This document shows, in pieces, positions 1-11,379 of a DNA stretch of 11,381 bases (the first letter of the stretch is position 1; every line of letters begins with the position of its first letter). The position numbers and the translations under genes were made by a program. The stretch is taken from contig NW_003314579.1 in the NCBI RefSeq assembly GCF_000143415.4, positions 1-11,381 of the forward strand. Direction: 5' to 3'. The DNA comes from Selaginella moellendorffii (taxonomy: Eukaryota > Plantae > Lycopodiophyta). The notes beneath the pieces are model-generated. The model was not told the DNA's origin. It did not search any database and was given only the letters and a program-made list of their open reading frames with translations.

Positions 1-659
1 GTTTACGAACACCGAATATCTTTCAGCGCAACGCATGAGGCAAGCCTTGAAATTCTCTTTTTGTAAACAACTAGCACTGGTTTTACACAACAGGTATCGC
101 CAAATGTACTACCATATGGAGATATTTAAGAACGCAGATGTGATCGTAACTCCTACCACAGCGTGAGCTTGTTAGAACCTTGGTTGCATACTCTGAGCAC
201 TTGATCCACAGGGCAACAGCACCATCTATTTCGTTGGACGCTCTTGAATGTGGAGAACTCAACTATGTCTATGGAGGTAGCCGTCTTGAGTTTTGCTAAT
301 GTTCCAGCGATTTGTTTCAACGTGAATCATTGCAGCTAAACTCATGCGGTACCAGATTGCTGGGAACTTCATCGGACTTCCCGCGATATCTGTGCCGGTA
401 AACCACATGAACAAACTCCATCTCTAGCTAGCTCAATCTTTGGAGTTACCAGGTTGGATTTGACCAGGCGGGCATGCCGATTGGCATCCAACTTATCGGG
501 AAACCATGGTCGGAAGCTACGCTGCTCAGGCTTGCATACGTGATTGAGGTGAGAGATCACATTCTCCATTCACAGAGATGATAAAAGCTTTTTACTCTAC
601 AGGGCCTTTGTGCTGCTGAGAGCCGGCGGCCAGAGGTGTTGTTCGATCTCTTGCTATAA
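1..659 (+). CDS. FAAH: Fatty acid amide hydrolase (amidase-signature family), 3' part. Exons <1-39, 94-162, 212-276, 336-397, 453-548, 603-659 (stop TAA 657-659)
   Basis: Manual splicing gives FTNTEYLSAQRMRYRQMYYHMEIFKNADVIVTPTTAATAPSISLDALECGELNYVYGAKLMRYQIAGNFIGLPAISVPVGFDQAGMPIGIQLIGKPWSEATLLRLAYVIEGLCAAESRRPEVLFDLLL*. This is colinear with the plant FAAH C-terminus as recalled (DVIVTPTT, N-x-x-G-x-PAISVPVG, G-x-PIG-x-Q-x-x-G-x-PW-x-EAT). Introns are 49-59 nt with consistent phases; the first has a GC donor. Confidence 0.92.
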
Positions 660-813
660 ATTTGGCGAGCTTTGTAGGATTTCCTTATGCAATGTAATGT
701 TTAGTTTTTATTTAAGTATACATAGTTAGTGTTTAATGTTAGTACTAATATAAACCTTGGTGTCACCTTTTATGAAAGGAGATTTTAAAACTTGGATCTG
801 ATTGTCCATCTAA

Positions 814-1154
814 CGTCGTGCCCGCATTGCCACCGAAGCTCTCCTCCACATGAGCGCTACTGCTCGTGGCGGTCGTGCAAATCCCCTGGAGACGAAGCCC
901 GAGCGGATGATCCGGCAGATGGAACAGTGCGCGAGGCTGCAGACGCTGCTGCAGGAGCTCGTTGCCGTCGGCGATGCCGCGCGCATTCTTGCGGGCCATG
1001 GAATTGGCGCGGAGCTTCACGCTGTCGCGGTAGTCCTCGTGGACCTTGAGCGCGCGCTCGATGCGGGCGATGGAGCTGTTGCTGGAGATCCAGCTGCTGC
1101 GGAAGATGATCTCGATGATGTTGCGCGACGAATCGCCGCGCCCCAGCTCCGACA
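814..1154 (-). pseudogene. Truncated, internally deleted exon of a plant C2H2-zinc-finger / ADP-ribosylation(PARP-like)-fold gene (At1g75710/At5g54630-like family)
   Basis: Minus strand reads VSELGRGDSSRNIIEIIFRSSWISSNSSIARIERALKVH/EDYRDSVKLRANSMARKNARGIADGNELL, then after a frameshift SSVCSLAHCSICRIIRSGFVS, then after another frameshift GICTTATSSSAH. These match recalled family motifs (VSEL..DS.RNI.EIIF.SSW; ..ADGNELLRF; C..C.IIR.GF; G..TT.TS..AH). It is preceded by an intact acceptor (ctaattctttgtgttcttcag|tg, AG at 1156-1155). The C2H2 exon and C-terminal RA.LVCRVIAG motif are absent. Confidence 0.8.
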
Positions 1155-1252
1155 CTGAAGAACACAAAGAATTAGAATGGGTCGATCAAAGAGAGAATAT
1201 TTTGCGACAATCAAGACCGAAAAGGAAAATACTCCAAATTTAGACCACGGCC

Positions 1253-1307: not shown

Positions 1308-2621
1308 ATGGCAATGCTTCGGGCAGGTCGGTTATGCCGTAGGTTTTCTTCTCTGTCAAAGGCGTCACTAGACGTAGATGGTGTCTTCATGAACCGATGC
1401 GAACTGGCGAAGTTGCAGAGGGCGCTATCCAAGCGCCCGGGAGATGCCGGAGTCGTGGCGGCTCTGCAGGGGCCCAAGTCGTCGGGCAAGACCATGCTGA
1501 TCAGCGAGTTTTGCAGGAGGCAGCGGGAAGGTATGTTTGCCGGAACGTCCACGTACGTGAGTCTTCGTCACCCTGGCCTCACCGACCCCGGACGCTTGGC
1601 CACGGGCCTCATGGGGGGCTTCCTCAAATCCGTATCGTCTTTCCGGGCTGTAGACACCGGGAAGGATGTGGTCGGGCAATGGGCGATGGAGGTGGGGTTG
1701 AAGGATGAAGACTTGGAGACTCATCCATTCGGCTATGGACACTTCCGACTGTTTGAGGAGCCAGAGCCCACGGGGATGGTTGCAGTGCTAGACGCTCTCA
1801 GGCGATGTTTCCTGTCATGGATGAAGATCTTAAGACTCGAGGGCGGGCTTTATACGAAGGGTTTCCCTACAATCTTCATTGACGAGGCCAGCGCTTTGAT
1901 GTCGTGGACGGAGACGGCTGATGGGAGAGCGGCCATGAACCTGCTTTTCAGATGTCTGTTGGCGATGTCCCAGGAGGATTGTTCGACTAACGTCGTCCTG
2001 GGGTCGTCGGAGAGCTTCTTTGAGCGCTGGCTGGGCAACTGCACCCCCGTCGGAGGTCATCGTGTGGCGGAGTGGTACGTTGGGCATTTCCCGGAGCCCC
2101 TCGCCAAGGCATATTTCATGCGCCGGGTAGGGGAAGCCAAGCAGGCGGAGGTTGCTCCTCTGTGGGATGGCGTCTATCGCCTGTATGGCGGACAGGCGCT
2201 CGAGCTGAACCTCTTGGCGGGCTTGATTTGTGATTCTGAGCCGGGCGAGGCTGCGGAGGTCTTTCGAGGAGAAGCAGGGCTCTCAACCAGCAGTGCCGTT
2301 TCGGATGTGGTTTCAGGCTGGTCTCCCCGCCGCCTTGAGCGCTTTGATGGGAGGAGCGATGCGCTGTGGAAGCCGGAGGAATGGACTGAGGTGATAAGGG
2401 TGTGTGCAAAGGCGCCGGATGGTGTGGTGCCCAAGTGCGAGCTCAAGATAGCACAAGAAAGTGTTGACTCCATGATCGAGCACGATCGCCTTCAAGTGCA
2501 GCCTGTTATCAGCTGGGCTGAGAGCAGGACTGATCAAGACTTAGATTCCTATCCGCTTGTCATGCCAATGACAAAGGCAGAGCACCATGGGATGAAGCGG
2601 CTAGCCCGTCAACTTTCTTAA
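1308..2621 (+). CDS. Intronless P-loop NTPase, 437 aa, ATPase_2 ('archaeal ATPase')/AAA_16 STAND-like; N-terminus resembles a mitochondrial presequence
   Basis: Uninterrupted GC-rich ORF from ATG to TAA. Motifs: pre-P-loop FMNR-x-EL, Walker A GPKSSGKT (1470-1493), Y-V-S-L-R strand, Walker B IFIDEA (from 1872), VVLGSS-E-S-F-F-x-x-W-L, and helical-domain YRLYGG. N-terminus MAMLRAGRLCRRFSSLSK is Arg/Ser-rich with no acidic residues. Confidence 0.85.
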   Translation: MAMLRAGRLCRRFSSLSKASLDVDGVFMNRCELAKLQRALSKRPGDAGVVAALQGPKSSGKTMLISEFCRRQREGMFAGTSTYVSLRHPGLTDPGRLATGLMGGFLKSVSSFRAVDTGKDVVGQWAMEVGLKDEDLETHPFGYGHFRLFEEPEPTGMVAVLDALRRCFLSWMKILRLEGGLYTKGFPTIFIDEASALMSWTETADGRAAMNLLFRCLLAMSQEDCSTNVVLGSSESFFERWLGNCTPVGGHRVAEWYVGHFPEPLAKAYFMRRVGEAKQAEVAPLWDGVYRLYGGQALELNLLAGLICDSEPGEAAEVFRGEAGLSTSSAVSDVVSGWSPRRLERFDGRSDALWKPEEWTEVIRVCAKAPDGVVPKCELKIAQESVDSMIEHDRLQVQPVISWAESRTDQDLDSYPLVMPMTKAEHHGMKRLARQLS

Positions 2622-2958
2622 AGCATGTAATCATAGTCAATTAAAGTCAACGAATAGTTATCTATAACTTTAGTGTTCTTAAGGATAAACTTATCTGATA
2701 ACTTAAGGAGTAGTTTTTCAGTCCGAATTTACTCACCTTGTAATCCCACACATTCATTTAGATTTTTCAACAAGAGCTAGGTAAAGTCGAGCCTTTGTTC
2801 TCAAACATTGCTATAATTAATTAAAGATTCTTTTGTGATAAGCTAGAAGGAATTGAAACTAGAACATATGTCGTTAAGTTTAAGCCGGGGTTTTCGCTCC
2901 CCAGCCCTAACCCAGGAACTCACGCAAGCGAGCGCGCTTGGGGCGAAGAGAGGCGGCG

Positions 2959-4658
2959 ATGAGCGTCCTGACGCTGGATCTGCGGCCTGGCGCTGGCATC
3001 GGCGCCTTCAGCCTAGGTATGGTTGGATCCTCCCGCGCAATTGACCTAGAATTCTTCTCTCCGGGCGTTAGCTGAGCTTGACTCTCGAGAAATTCGTGTC
3101 CAGGGATGCCAGTTTGTGAGGCGCTTGCTTATATCGAGCAGCATCACTCCGTCTTTGATGTCGTGCACATCAAATTCAACGACGAGGTGAAGAAAAATTT
3201 CTTTTTTCTTTCCTTTCTCCTCATTAGCGACACTCGTTCAGGATCCGCTACAATTCGACCTTGTTATAAGCTTTCCAGAGCATGGATTTCACCTTCGTTT
3301 CGAGCCGCGGACGCAGGTCTGCGATTTTCTTGCTTTTTTTTCTTCTTGCTTTCTCACCAATGGTAAATGCGTCTATTCTAGAGGCTTCGTCTGATAGAAG
3401 TATATGATGTCCAACGCTTGCAAATGCGGTATGCCACGTCCTCGATTGGGTGAGCTCGCTAGCGTTTTTCTCTCCTTGATGGAATTTCTCGAGACTTACA
3501 CTTTACAGAGGTCCCAGTGTCGCGGCTACCTTCGTTGCCGTTTACGCACTCTTTGGCCCAACGTTTCCGGGATCGTTCGATGCAAAGCGGAATATCTATA
3601 CTCTCTTCTATCCTGTAAGCCTTGTCTTTCAAACTTTCCAGCCTGAAGGTGGGGCTTTATGATCATCTTTGCTTGCAGGGCCTGGCGTTCACATTTCCGA
3701 TTCCTGGGCAGTACACTAACTGCTGCCAAGATCGAGAAGGTAAGAGATCTACGTCCTGCGCATAATGGCAATGTTTCTGACTTTCATTTTTTCGTTTTTG
3801 GCTAAACCAGCTGAGCTGCCTATTGAGTTTCCAGATGGAACTACTCCTGTGATGTCTCGCGTCTGTATATATGACGGTGCGCTTGGTGGTAATGTGGAGG
3901 CTGGCGCTAACCTTGCGGCCCTGATAAAGAAAGCCATCCCGCCGCAACTACCTTCAGGAAGTTTATACATGGAAGAAGTCCATGCAAAGGTGTTTTGACT
4001 TTGTAAGTTTCTTATGCCTGCCATCTAAACTTCTTCTCTTTTGCATTAACAGCTCGCTGAGGACCTGTTCTTTACAACCAGTAAGAAGCGCTTGCCGTTT
4101 GGAGCGTCTCCTCAGGACGTGTGGGCAGAACTTGGCCGCCCCGACGGAATTCATCAAAAGCAGGTAACTATCGATATGAGAGAGAGAATCAGTCACAACA
4201 ATCTTTTCGTGTTACTCAGGTGGATCCTATGGTTATACACTCGGCATCGGATCCGAGGCCGAACTCAGCCCTTTNNNNNNNNNNNNNNNNNNNNNNNNNN
4301 NNNNNNNNNNNNNNNNNNNNNNNNNNNNNNNNNNNNNNNNNNNNNNNNNNNNNNNNNNNNNNNNNNNNNNNNNNNNNNNNNNNNNNNNNNNNNNNNNNNN
4401 NNNNNNNNNNNNNNNNNNNNNNNNNNNNNNNNNNNNNNNNNNNNNNNNNNNNNNNNNNNNNNNNNNNNNNNNNNNNNNNNNNNNNNNNNNNNNNNNNNNN
4501 NNNNNNNNNNNCTATGGCTACCGAAACATCGCATTTGAAGTAACCATATTCCCAAGTCTCTCTTTGGAACTCACTATGTTTTTTTCTTCTTTGTTTCTTG
4601 TATGTAGGTTATGAAGAACGGCCACATAGCAACTGTGACACTCTTCCAAACGAATTAG
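2959..4658 (+). CDS. PHAF1: PHAF1 / UPF0183 family protein (At3g51130-like). Exons 2959-3016, 3104-3186, 3242-3316, 3382-3449, 3509-3614, 3679-3739, 3811-3989, 4053-4163, 4220->4274, <4512-4539, 4608-4658
   Basis: Spliced translation MSVLTLDLRPGAGIGAFSLGMPVCEALAYIEQHHSVFDVVHIKFNDEDPLQFDLVISFPEHGFHLRFEPRTQRLRLIEVYDVQRLQMRYATSSIGGPSVAATFVAVYALFGPTFPG...LPIEFPDGTTPV...SLYMEEVHAK...PFGASPQDVWAELGRP...VIHSASDPRP...YGYRNIAFEVMKNGHIATVTLFQTN* closely matches the recalled plant UPF0183 sequence. All visible introns are GT-AG with consistent phases. Confidence 0.93.
4275..4511. other. Assembly gap (237 N) inside the PHAF1 gene
   Basis: Run of N from 4275 to 4511. Confidence 0.99.
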
Positions 4659-4896: not shown

Positions 4897-6697
4897 TCAC
4901 AATGCCTCGTGACACCCCGCCGTTTGCAAGAGCACTGCTTTGATCTCTTCGGGGGCGATCTCGGCATCGCTACATTGCTGCTAAACAAGCCACCATTACC
5001 ATTTGCACGAGAGGAAAAGAGAACAAAAAAAGAACTTATACCTCGGCACGAAAGACGTCGAGGACGAAGCCATTGAAGCAGCTGATAACAGCCTGCTGGA
5101 CGTCCAGGCCAAGATCATCCAGAGCTCTCATCGTGGAGAGCAAAAGGCCTGGCGTTCTCGCGCAGAACATATGAATGTTAATTCCCTTGCCATCCCTTGT
5201 TCTCACCTCCACCTACAAAGACAAAGCCAAGGGGAATAAAAAAAACCATGAGAAAGGAACCACTTGGTCTTATACTACTATAGACTCCTACTATAGTACC
5301 TTTGCTGGCTGGAGATCTGTAGGAGGCCCGGGGAGCAACGGAAGCGGGGAGATGCTGGACGCCGGACATTCCTCCTTGACGCAAGGAGCGAAACTTTGGG
5401 GCGAAAGCAACGCTCCGGATTGCTGCTGTGGCGGAATTCCCATGCTCCCTCCATCTGCTGGGCCTTCCAGCTCGCTGTGGAGCTCGTTGATCCTCTGGAG
5501 GAGCTCCTTGAGATACTCGATCGCGTCACCCAGAATAGACGCTCTATCCATCTGACAAAATCAAACCAAGTTGAGAGTGAGTGAGAGCGAGAGGAGAAAA
5601 AGAGGTAAAGGCATGGAAAGAGGAGCGGGCGAGTGAATGCCAAGTTGCCCGAGTGGTTTGAAAGTACTCACCTTTGTAATTTTGGGGACCACCGAGCGAA
5701 GCATGTACAAGCGATCATTAAGCTTCTTCCGCCGTCGCCGCTCCGCCATGAGATTCTTGGCCGGAAGGCCCTTGCGATTCCCCCGGCCGGAAGGGCCCTT
5801 GTCCGCCACCTGGTGGCCGCCCATCGCCTCGTCATTCTCGCACAGAAGCCCGGATCCATCGTCCATCTCCTCGTCCTCGCGGAGCTCCAGATCGACGGTG
5901 GCCATGTCGTCGGACGCCGACATCACCGGGCTCCTCTTATGGACCAGCGGCTTCTTGCTCGGGCTGCTCGGCGGCGGCGGCGCTGGATGATGGAGAGAAT
6001 CGTCGCCCATCTCGAGGGAAGAATCCGGCGGCGCTTTGATCGCCCCTACGGCTGCTGCTATGGATGGAGATGTTTGCCCGCTCCCTGTATGCTGCTGCTG
6101 CTCGTGATGGTGATGGTTGTTCTTCCCGGACTTGGGCTTGGTCACCACCGAGGAGTGATCCTTGAATTCTCCTCCACTGCCACCTCCAAAGCAGTCGCCA
6201 AAAATGCCATTGCCGCTCTTGATCATCCCAATGCTGAGGCTGCTCCCAATTCCACTGAAATTCCCAAAGCTCGCGCCAGTGCTGGGGCCGAAGAGAGCTG
6301 GGAAGTCGAGGATCTGGCTGCCCGCCATGTCGGGCAGGAAGCCCGAGTGGAGATTGGCCACCGAGGACGAGGAAGAACACGCCGAGGAGGAAGCGCTGGC
6401 GTGGTGGTGGAAGCCGTTCCGGATGGGAGGCGGCGGTGGCAGCAATCCGGGCGAGAAATCGGTGATGAAGCAGCCGCTGGGCATGGAGGATTCGTCCAGG
6501 AAGGCGGACAAGCCGGTGGACCTGGCGTCGGATTTGCTGGCGGAGTGTGAGGCGGCGGCGGCGGCGGCCATGAAGTGGTGGTGCGAGGGCTGCGCTCCTC
6601 CTCCAGCGGCGCTAGGGTAAGAAGGCATGTCATCGATGAGCGAGCCATCGTACCAATCCTCCTCAAACGAGCCGTGGAGTGCCTGATCGACCACCAT
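4897..6697 (-). CDS. ICE1: ICE1/SCREAM-like bHLH transcription factor with C-terminal ACT-like domain. Core exons 6697-5672, 5551-5300, 5212-5042, 4980(or 4977)-4897, ~510 aa; probably extended N-terminally to ATG 6941
   Basis: [34 protein letters not shown]|[29 protein letters not shown] is the ICE1/SCRM bHLH-zipper. The C-terminus [57 protein letters not shown]|QC...[11 protein letters not shown] is the ICE1 ACT-like domain. VKEE SUMO-type motif at 5369-5380. Three phase-0 GT-AG introns at the usual ICE1 positions. Confidence 0.93.
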
Positions 6698-6941
6698 AGC
6701 CTGCGCGGCAAGGGAAATTTCTCATCCAGGCGATCGATCACGCGGAGATCCAAGAAAGAATACCTTGTGCTGTGGCTGATGCTGCTGCTGCTGCTGCCGA
6801 TCGTCCCCTATCGGCACCGTCCTGCGAAATTTCGAATCAAACAGTGAAAATTTCGGGAGAATCGCGGCAAGAACAGCACCTCATCTCCGATCCCTCGCCC
6901 CAGATTCCCTCCCTGCACAAGACGCTCGCGTCCGACGCCAT
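6698..6941 (-). CDS. Predicted N-terminal extension of the ICE1-like gene: exons 6941-6880 and 6821-6764, joined to 6700 (adds 41 aa [41 protein letters not shown])
   Basis: Two GT-AG introns, 6879-6822 (58 nt, AG|GTGCTG...TTTCGCAG) and 6763-6701 (63 nt, AAG|GTATTC...GCGCAG), match local intron sizes. They keep an ATGGCG start in frame with the main ORF, and the (CAG)5 repeat falls in frame as poly-Q. Confidence 0.6.
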
Positions 6942-9275: not shown

Positions 9276-9730
9276 CATCTTCGGTTCTAACAGAATGAAA
9301 CGGAAATGCTTAAAACAAGTCACCTCTGTTGGCGACAAGGACGACGCTCTCTCTCTTTGCGTTTGCGAACGAGAGACTAATGTTCTTCCCGCAAGCGCAG
9401 ATGTTAAAAATCGCGTTCGTCCCAAGTTTTAATGTCCTATGCACATGCCAGGAATTGAAATAAAAACTCGCGACAGCGACGCGTCTGGATCCAGCAGCGC
9501 AGCGAGCAAGCAGAGCGGCAAAAGGAATGTCAACCTCGGGAGCTATCGGATCAAGATGATCCTCCCGGAAACATCAGCGTCAAGAGAAAAGAAAAAGAGG
9601 CACACAAACAACAAAACCATCGGTCGCAAGCCAGGCGACGCGGCAGCGCCAATGCAGCGCCGCAACAGTAATCTAATCCACCCCCGAATCTAAAATTCAA
9701 TGCTTACCGGAGCCCTACTACCGCCCGCGC

Positions 9731-9764
9731 CCATCGCCATCGCCATCGCCATCGCCATCGCCAT
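9731..9764 (-). repeat. (ATGGCG)n hexamer repeat giving six in-frame ATGs (MAMAMAMAMAM)
   Basis: On +, CAT occurs at 9732, 9738, 9744, 9750, 9756 and 9762, each spaced 6 nt within (CCATCG)n. Confidence 0.9.
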
Positions 9765-9780: not shown

Positions 9781-11238
9781 GAACAGGGTGTTAGGGCTTT
9801 AGTTTTAAATTTGGAATATTCACCACTACTTGGCGCGCGATTTTCGGATGCATTGAACTTGGATTCCCAGCATAAAGAAATCCAGCCCTGTTTATACATT
9901 TTTCTCTTTGTAGCAGAGTCTTTTGTAGGGAGCACCAGCTTTACTCCTTGCATTGTGGAATTCACCAAAAAGTATAAAATAAACAGCCAAATTATAAAAT
10001 AAAACTCTAAAAAATAAACCAAGAGAAAATTTCAGATGCGTTTCATAAGGCGCCTCCCAAATTCGCGGCCTGGCACCAAATTTCTTTAAATCCGCTGCCC
10101 GATTGATTGATTCCCATGGGTTTAGCTTCGGACAGCTCAAAGACACAAGCCTTTCTATTTTTATCTCCCCGCAAACTAAAGAATCACTAAAATCAAGCCA
10201 CAAGCCACGACTGGGTCTCGGCACCGCCCTCCACGGCCATTAAGGTCTCTTTCCTAAAACCATGAAAATCTCTCGATCGAATCCATATCGAATTGTGTGT
10301 TTGGAATAAACTGGAGGCACAAGCGGCCAGCGAGCAGACACCAAATGCCACATCCAAAAATTCCACACCACCCCACCAACAAGCAAGGCGCCGAGTTGAC
10401 ACGAGTACGGCACTAGACAATCCCCGTACGGACGCCTTTGACTGGCCAGTCTCTGCAATTAGAAAGAAAGAGAAATGGGAAAAGCTTGAAATGAGGCAGA
10501 GATTTAAAGACAAAGAAAAGAAATCCTGGCCGCTGTCCCCAGCCTTGTCGTTCGTGCTCTTGTTGTTGCCACTGTTGCTTGTGGCGAGGCATGGCACAGA
10601 GAACACAGTGGCCCCACATTTTATGATAGACAAAGAAAAAACATCGAGTTTTGGGCATATAAAGGGCTGCGGGGAATCAATCGGGATAGATAGATTCGCT
10701 GGAGATTCGGCTGCTTGAATGAGGACACTAGCAAGCAAGGCGGGAGCAAATTGCCAAGGGGAAGACGAGACATTCAGCCAGTCGAATCAAGCGGAATCGG
10801 TATTATATCTCCGGCCGTTACATACTTTTGGAGAGAAGAAGGTGGCGGACATTGAGTGATTGATTGAGAGTCCAAGCTCGCCAACCAAAACGGTTGTTCC
10901 TGGAAAGGGGAATCTAACTTACCCCGGTCTCCAGGTCTTGGTCTCTTTTAGGTCAAGTCGTTCTTGTTAGGGTTCTTACGGTAAGGAAAAAATGAGCTTT
11001 GACCTTTTGCAAAACCCTAAAAAAAAGCTGTCCGGCCAGCACTCACATGCCACTGCCAAATGCCACAGATGTTACTCCAGACAGCCAGTCAAGAAAGCGA
11101 CACACATTAGCTTACCATTGGCTACCCAGTAGCACACAACAGCTATAACAAAAATCAAATAAGAATTTCTACGAAACTATTTCTAGACGTACAGTGTATA
11201 GCTACGAAATACGTAAACTGCAGAGCGGGGATATTCTC

Positions 11239-11379
11239 TTACAGATTCCTACGCCACCTATCTAGCCCTAACTTCGACGTAACGCTCATATACTCTAGTT
11301 TTTCTTGCATTGCGCCTTGTGGCCCCGCATTATTGAACGGAGCAGAATTTAGTGGATCTTCCAATGTGACTGAAGTTTC
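11239..11379 (-). CDS. Possible last coding exon of an unidentified gene entering from the right edge (...ETSVTLEDPLNSAPFNNAGPQGAMQEKLEYMSVTSKLGLDRWRRNL*)
   Basis: One minus-strand frame is open for 46 codons from the window edge to TAA 11241-11239, followed by T-rich 3'UTR-like sequence. No family recognised. Confidence 0.3.
   Translation of the reverse strand, partial: ETSVTLEDPLNSAPFNNAGPQGAMQEKLEYMSVTSKLGLDRWRRNL

Follow-up and report, generated by a model that had tools for sequence, protein, structure and literature searches.

Pfam describes the ATPase_2 family (PF01637) as an 'ATPase domain predominantly from Archaea'. Its solved structures 2qen (Pyrococcus abyssi PABY2304) and 2fna (Sulfolobus solfataricus SSO1545) have a three-domain build, in which a nucleotide-binding alpha/beta domain is joined to a helical lid and a winged helix. 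This module is also found in the Orc1/Cdc6 initiators and in the NOD region of STAND NTPases such as plant NLRs, CED-4 and Apaf-1. A further point of comparison is Yme2 of yeast, a protein of the mitochondrial inner membrane. Yme2 requires its Walker motifs for function and for the formation of a high-molecular-weight complex, and its best remote matches are Orc/Cdc6-type initiators (PMC9284673). We found no paper joining Selaginella with PF01637, and the PF01637 papers that we did find were unrelated to our subject. The eukaryotic branch of ATPase_2 to which the gene described here belongs, characterized by an FFNR-type N-terminal motif, seems to be undescribed.

The stretch of DNA that we analysed (the window) is 11,381 bp long and is the entire Selaginella moellendorffii scaffold GL377883.1 of assembly GCA_000143415.2; the two sequences are identical. 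An ATPase_2-type AAA+ NTPase gene lies at positions 1308..2621 of its plus strand. It is annotated on the scaffold as a single-exon CDS of 437 aa plus stop, and the ORF listing gives an ATG start and zero internal stops. In the public annotation this gene stands amid spliced Amidase, PHAF1 and bHLH models. The flanking spliced genes were compared with Pfam one exon at a time. Upstream are the 3' exons of an amidase-signature gene (2..578, plus strand), with a Pfam Amidase match at 432-578 that runs to the last profile position, the profile ending at about 527. Downstream is the 5' part of a PHAF1/UPF0183 gene (2956..4273, plus strand), with Pfam PHAF1 matches at 3082-3363 and 3744-3995; this gene is cut by the sole assembly gap in the window (4275-4511), which is outside the ATPase ORF and its junctions. 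Farther along the window, the minus strand carries a plant bHLH gene with an ACT-like domain according to Pfam. A minus-strand ORF at 766-1185 suggested a fragment of a plant zinc-finger-like family, but this was not supported by Pfam or the Atlas.

Contamination can be ruled out, because plant genes lie 150-340 nt from the ORF on both sides with no gap in between. The ATPase ORF has a GC content of 0.58 (GC3 0.66), whereas its upstream flank (1159-1307) has 0.34 and its downstream flank (2622-2955) 0.38. For the large bHLH exon of the same window the GC content is 0.61 (GC3 0.73). Thus, the composition of the ATPase ORF is within the range of a neighbouring plant gene. A preliminary description of this locus had reported that the ORF is intact, that its flanks are AT-rich and that the plant genes bordering it are rich in introns; all three observations hold.

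The motifs listed in that description are also present, in the order given. All coordinates that follow are on the plus strand. The family motif F-x-N-R-x-E-L (FMNRCEL, aa 27-33; 1386..1406) is followed by the Walker A motif GPKSSGKT (aa 55-62; 1470..1493), the stretch YVSLRHPG (aa 83-90) and the Walker B motif PTIFIDEA (aa 187-194; 1866..1889). Next comes a helix plus strand beta4, LLAMSQEDCSTNVVLGSSESFFERWL (aa 217-242; 1956..2033), which contains the SSxSFFxxWL motif (sensor-1 region) and in which the family sequence TKE is replaced by SQE (K222Q). YVGHF (aa 257-261) and AKAYF (aa 266-270) precede the motif VYRLYGG (aa 289-295), whose invariant GG at aa 294-295 belongs to the helical lid domain (2094..2327). 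The protein ends in a winged-helix domain (aa ~356-436; 2373..2615), assigned from the model and the structure alignment, where the family motif N-x-L-H-x-R-P has become DRLQVQP in the window copy.

To place the protein in a family we used an alignment of 23 full-length relatives (A1), which are colinear with the window protein over its full length. Positions R30, E32, G55, G60, K61, P187, D192, G294, G295 and D411 are invariant in A1, and E193 is nearly so. The window protein has both a GxxxxGK[ST] Walker A and an hhhhDE Walker B (TIFIDE, with D192/E193). With Walker A and B intact, it is a candidate active P-loop NTPase. Its own match to PF01637 (27.4 bits, E 3.5e-6) is below the gathering cut-off of 33.2 and spans profile positions 111-222 only. 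All 23 of the A1 relatives match PF01637 at E<=0.01 (best 5.8e-25) and those tested pass the cut-off, including the paralogs P0003 (47.6 bits) and P0077 (53.7 bits). Because its colinear relatives match the family in this way, we conclude that the window protein is a divergent but genuine relative of ATPase_2. A search of NCBIfam with the window protein gave no match, nor did a direct sequence search of the PDB with this protein alone.

The AlphaFold2 model built on A1 (mean pLDDT 82.6, pTM 0.84) begins with a low-confidence N-terminal helix (aa 2-19) and continues with an alpha/beta core for nucleotide binding; the helical lid spans aa ~263-340, and the winged helix is modelled with confidence. 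When this model was compared with solved structures by Foldseek and VIA-align, the best match was 2qen (Z 22.3, 325 residues aligned, rmsd 4.8) and the second was 2fna (Z 20.7, 320 residues aligned), both over aa 12-431. Plant NLR NOD, Orc1/Cdc6, CED-4 and TnsC structures came next at Z 14-18. The model thus predicts the domain build of 2qen and 2fna, in which a lid and a C-terminal winged helix are added to the AAA+ core. The assignment to ATPase_2 rather than to NB-ARC or to the classical AAA families, which had been made from motif patterns, is therefore upheld by the Pfam matches of the relatives and by the structure matches. Conversely, the segment of about 110 aa that had been taken for a C-terminal tail is really the rest of the helical lid plus the winged helix, since it aligns to 2qen and 2fna.

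The window protein shares the three-domain build of the archaeal proteins, their Walker A and B motifs and an N-terminal FxxR-type motif, but it is only about 12-14% identical to them. It also differs in being encoded by a eukaryotic nuclear gene, in its basic N-terminal extension and in long insertions at aa ~113-156 and 399-416. It has an AAA+ domain plus a winged helix in common with Orc1/Cdc6 (Z 15-17); however, the rmsd is 9-10 A over the full length, there is no family match at the sequence level and the biological context is a different one.

The likeness to STAND NTPases requires more discussion, because it could mean that the protein is a minimal, NOD-only cytosolic switch in immunity or cell death, and that the expansion of the family reflects an arms race. 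The NBD, helical and winged-helix domains are in the same order and align to the NODs of plant NLRs, CED-4 and Apaf-1 with Z 15-18, and some relatives in the family have weak nSTAND/NACHT Pfam matches. The expansion itself, a tandem pair that is 99% identical, a dN/dS that is moderately high at 0.52 and an asymmetry in rates (all described below) would also suit such a switch. Against this, the fold of the archaeal ATPase_2 proteins is clearly the better fit, at Z 21-22, and the Pfam search of the window protein found no NB-ARC, NACHT, LRR or TPR match. Its 437 aa are wholly filled by the presequence-like region, the NBD, the lid and the winged helix, so that, as had been stated before, there is neither an effector domain nor a repeat sensor. 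PADLOC gave no match to the window protein, and its basic N-terminus, which is kept in the three closest paralogs, points to an organelle. We therefore consider a STAND-like switch very unlikely, and the role in immunity or cell death that had been offered as an example has found no specific support.

An exhaustive phmmer search of 1.84 billion cluster representatives found 65 proteins at E<=1e-3. About 30 of these could be attributed to a named organism, and our counts of organisms rest on those. At least 12 distinct family genes are present in S. moellendorffii: P0001, P0002 and its tandem twin, P0003, P0004, P0006, P0008, P0009, P0012, P0014/P0077, P0015 and P0084. As the window is itself an S. 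moellendorffii scaffold, these matches are paralogs of the window gene, not orthologs. Several of the S. moellendorffii members occur as two near-identical entries on separate scaffolds, which resemble haplotype pairs. The fern Adiantum capillus-veneris has P0010/P0070 and P0034. Green-algal members come from Coccomyxa, Trebouxia, [Myrmecia] bisecta and Nannochloris/'Chlorella' desiccata, and the family is also represented in the xanthophyte Tribonema minus. The other matches are one Chlamydiales MAG and contigs from Logan, ENA and JGI. A scan of prokaryotes with a narrower alignment (A2) gave two bacterial MAG members. Among the roughly 30 attributed matches there were no fungal, seed-plant or bryophyte members.

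Thus, the family is lineage-restricted, as had been proposed, with an expansion in Selaginella and members in a fern and in green algae. Relatives in land plants and green algae had been named as an outcome that would speak against horizontal transfer, and the result comes near to it: members were identified in a lycophyte, a fern and green algae, but none of the attributed matches is from a seed plant or a bryophyte. The fungal or prokaryotic affinity that had been proposed is not supported, since the closest proteins are paralogs from the same genome and none of the attributed matches is fungal. The homologs outside Selaginella include native eukaryotic genes: that of Trebouxia has at least four exons, and that of Adiantum spans 6.6 kb for a product of 588 aa.

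We then inferred a maximum likelihood tree of 49 rows (LG+C20+F+G4 PMSF), which is unrooted and has no archaeal outgroup. The window gene groups with P0002 at 100/100. It is part of a subclade of seven rows (100/99); of the six rows besides the window gene, five are from Selaginella and one is unattributed. This subclade lies in a Selaginella plus Adiantum clade of 15 rows (97/96). The green algae and Tribonema form a group at 92/77, and the remaining 21 rows are placed past a long branch at 100/100. The sister relationship between the plants and the green algae is suggested by distance, by E-values and by midpoint rooting of this unrooted tree. Because the window gene is nested in a Selaginella subclade within the Selaginella plus fern clade, with green algae nearest outside, recent horizontal transfer is not its source, and the proposal that it had been acquired horizontally is not supported. 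The family predates the split between lycophytes and ferns, and its nearest relatives are green-algal.

An older exchange at the level of the family is a different matter. The FFNR-type ATPases might have passed long ago between eukaryotes and probably intracellular bacteria (Chlamydiae and Legionella-like Gammaproteobacteria), in which case the green lineage would hold the family by an old acquisition and not by ancestral descent. The 21-row group is indeed mixed. Three of its contigs (L002, L013 and L014) are eukaryote-like, with 19-33% in long ORFs, and four are truly bacterial, with 85-94% in long ORFs. Three of the bacterial contigs come from MAGs, one each of Chlamydiales, Parachlamydiales and Gammaproteobacteria, and the fourth is from Logan and carries RuvA, RuvC and GpsA. 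The Chlamydiales contig also has a TnpB-like gene and ribosomal L28. The range of the family is also patchy: it takes in one lycophyte and one fern among the land plants, trebouxiophytes and chlorophytes among the green algae, and a single xanthophyte. However, there are few bacterial members, they are scattered, and no two of them pair with the same non-attributed sequence. They have eukaryote-style basic N-terminal extensions, which better suit a transfer from eukaryote to bacterium. The unrooted tree gives no direction, and an exchange of this kind would concern the family and not this locus. Overall, we think it improbable that the green lineage obtained the family in this manner.

The tree and the locus together lead us to conclude, with good confidence, that the window gene is a native nuclear gene of S. 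moellendorffii, a dispersed and fast-evolving paralog in an expanded ATPase_2-type family. Its closest relatives are a tandem pair on scaffold GL377575 (L001, at ~9947-11260 and 14462-15769), 4.5 kb apart. The two members of this pair share 99% identity, and the window gene is 67% identical to either of them in amino acids and 78% in nucleotides. By the Nei-Gojobori method, the window gene differs from the pair with a dS of about 0.41 and a dN of 0.22, or a dN/dS of about 0.52. Over ~430 codons pN is 0.19 compared with a pS of 0.32, a difference of ~4.5 standard errors by a rough calculation from site counts. As pN is smaller than pS by this amount, the comparison indicates that the window gene has been under constraint, though a loose one.

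At the same time, the window copy is changing. Its branch in the ML tree is 0.36 long, compared with 0.13 for its sister, or ~2.8 times faster. It retains 42 of 53 family-conserved positions, including every catalytic one; altered positions include K222, N195 and the winged-helix motif. The acceleration is asymmetric and reflects either relaxed constraint or a shift in function. Given the fast branch and the altered motifs, the function of this copy may have changed or may be in the course of being lost.

These features raise the question of whether the window gene is a recent retrocopy, or an insertion carried by a transposon, that is drifting towards a pseudogene. It is intronless, its nearest paralogs are on another scaffold, and within 10 kb the two loci have no flanking genes in common. 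Nucleotide similarity to the paralog locus is limited to the CDS (1307-2604), and the faster branch and altered motifs would fit decay. However, the tandem pair, which is of the parental type, is equally intronless. All five Selaginella loci examined, the pair included, encode the ATPase core in one exon, and annotated Selaginella introns occur only in the N-terminal extension (P0003) or the C-terminal tail (P0077). Thus, the lack of introns is a trait of the Selaginella family and not a mark of this locus. We found no poly(A) tract, target-site duplication or terminal repeats around the window gene, and at a dS of 0.41 its flanks are not expected to align with those of the paralogs anyway. 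The ORF of 437 codons is still open, and a dN/dS below 1 points to constraint. A recent retrocopy or transposon insertion is accordingly a doubtful explanation, to which we give little weight. What stands of the earlier proposal of a mobile copy is that the gene is a dispersed duplicate; the marks of mobility are missing.

The N-terminal 26 aa of this native paralog, MAMLRAGRLCRRFSSLSKASLDVDGV (1308..1385, plus strand), are Arg/Ser-rich and resemble a presequence. They contain five Arg and one Lys, and there is no acidic residue before aa 22. The helix predicted at aa 2-19 is amphipathic, with low pLDDT. The stretch MAMLRAGRxCRR is kept in the two nearest paralogs, and the three closest paralogs retain the basic, acid-poor character; the presequence-like N-terminus of the preliminary description is thus confirmed as a matter of composition. 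It is common for members of the family, the bacterial ones included, to have an extension of 20-100 aa ahead of the FFNR motif that is basic and poor in acidic residues; in a few (Trebouxia, P0015) the N-terminus is acidic instead. The candidate presequence is short, about 13-26 aa. It contains R-R-F↓S-S, in keeping with the '-3R' cleavage pattern of plants, but it is an unusually short segment. From these sequence features we infer that the window protein may be targeted to an organelle.

A mitochondrial address is suspected for the window protein and established for Yme2 (PMC9284673). Of the relatives, only green-algal members, with 41.9 and 31.5 bits, exceed the cut-off of PF10443 (RNA12), the AAA+ domain of Yme2; the window protein itself has no RNA12 match at E<=1. 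'Mitochondrial escape protein 2' is among the structural look-alikes in the Atlas (TM 0.63), and both Yme2/Rna12 and the window protein resemble initiator-clade AAA+ proteins. They differ in that the Walker B of Yme2 is DR (PMC9284673) whereas the window protein has the canonical DE. In addition, the AAA+ domain of Yme2 faces the intermembrane space behind an RRM and a TM helix, whereas neither an RRM nor a TM segment is found in the AlphaFold2 model of the window protein.

Based on these comparisons, we propose a model for how the window protein could work. Its short basic N-terminus would direct import of the ATPase into an organelle, probably the mitochondrion. Once imported, the protein may behave like AAA+ proteins of the initiator/STAND-like class, as an oligomer or a switch that depends on ATP, because Walker A and B are intact, Arg30/Glu32 and the GG are invariant and the lid is combined with a winged-helix module. 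The winged helix would hold a nucleic-acid or a protein partner. This mode of action would be akin to that proposed for the related AAA+ domain of Yme2. The role that we consider likeliest, although we rate it somewhat short of even, is that of an ATPase of an organelle, probably the mitochondrion, with a part in organelle maintenance or in gene expression.

In sum, the claim of gene transfer fails, and the main value of our result is this correction. What remains is an uncharacterised eukaryotic branch of ATPase_2 that is expanded in the spikemoss and has a sequence link to the poorly understood Yme2. One could go further and speculate that the FFNR-type proteins are an undescribed, organelle-targeted and Yme2-related family of AAA+/winged-helix ATPases in green algae, lycophytes and ferns, which was apparently lost in seed plants and became expanded and stripped of introns in Selaginella. 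Its sister clade would then be common to protists and intracellular bacteria (Chlamydiae, Legionella-like), where the protein is perhaps an effector directed at the mitochondrion. We regard this whole picture as unlikely to hold in full. Still, if the members are organellar, the family would be a testable lead on organelle maintenance factors that have no counterparts in seed plants.

The single-exon ATPase_2-type gene of the window has close relatives elsewhere in the Selaginella moellendorffii genome. On scaffold GL377575, two paralogs lie in tandem (L001:~9947-11260 and L001:14462-15769) and are 99% identical to each other. The first copy has lost the ATG used by the second copy and by the window gene, reading IPMLWAGR… instead; its annotated model begins 18 codons further downstream and so excludes the presequence-like segment. 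The protein cluster of the window ATPase holds no second near-identical entry, unlike those of several paralogs.

Upstream of the ATPase gene, the public amidase model (35-1158, plus strand) ends at 1158, whereas the Pfam Amidase profile ends at ~527-578. A GC-rich block (GC 0.60 at 801-1200) lies here, and both strands carry long stop-free readings across 766-1185. The minus-strand reading of 140 aa (…IIEIIFRSSW…IERALKVHE…ADGNELL…) is reminiscent of a plant zinc-finger-like family, an identity backed by neither Pfam nor Atlas. The block could be a gene relic or a mis-modelled last exon. A short (AT)n(AC)n microsatellite (~1262-1276) precedes the start codon of the ATPase gene by ~35 nt.

The scaffold totals just 11.4 kb, and downstream of the ATPase gene an assembly gap of 237 N (4275-4511) cuts off the PHAF1 gene model. 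Beyond it, a minus-strand gene (4897-6941) encodes a bHLH transcription factor with a plant ACT-like C-terminal domain; its motifs look ICE1/SCRM-like, making this a candidate subfamily. A second short microsatellite, a hexamer repeat (~9720-9760), translates as (Ala-Met/Ile)n within ORFs of both strands.

The eukaryote-type FFNR ATPase_2 clade to which the window gene belongs also has members on four bacterial contigs (L004:2333-3808, L010:504-1745, L011:3001-4240 and L012:10001-11323). Together, these contigs comprise metagenome-assembled genomes of Chlamydiales, Parachlamydiales and Gammaproteobacteria and a Logan contig with RuvA/RuvC. Some of these members have basic, presequence-like N-terminal extensions. 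The bacterial-contig members may derive from eukaryotes and serve intracellular bacteria as effectors.
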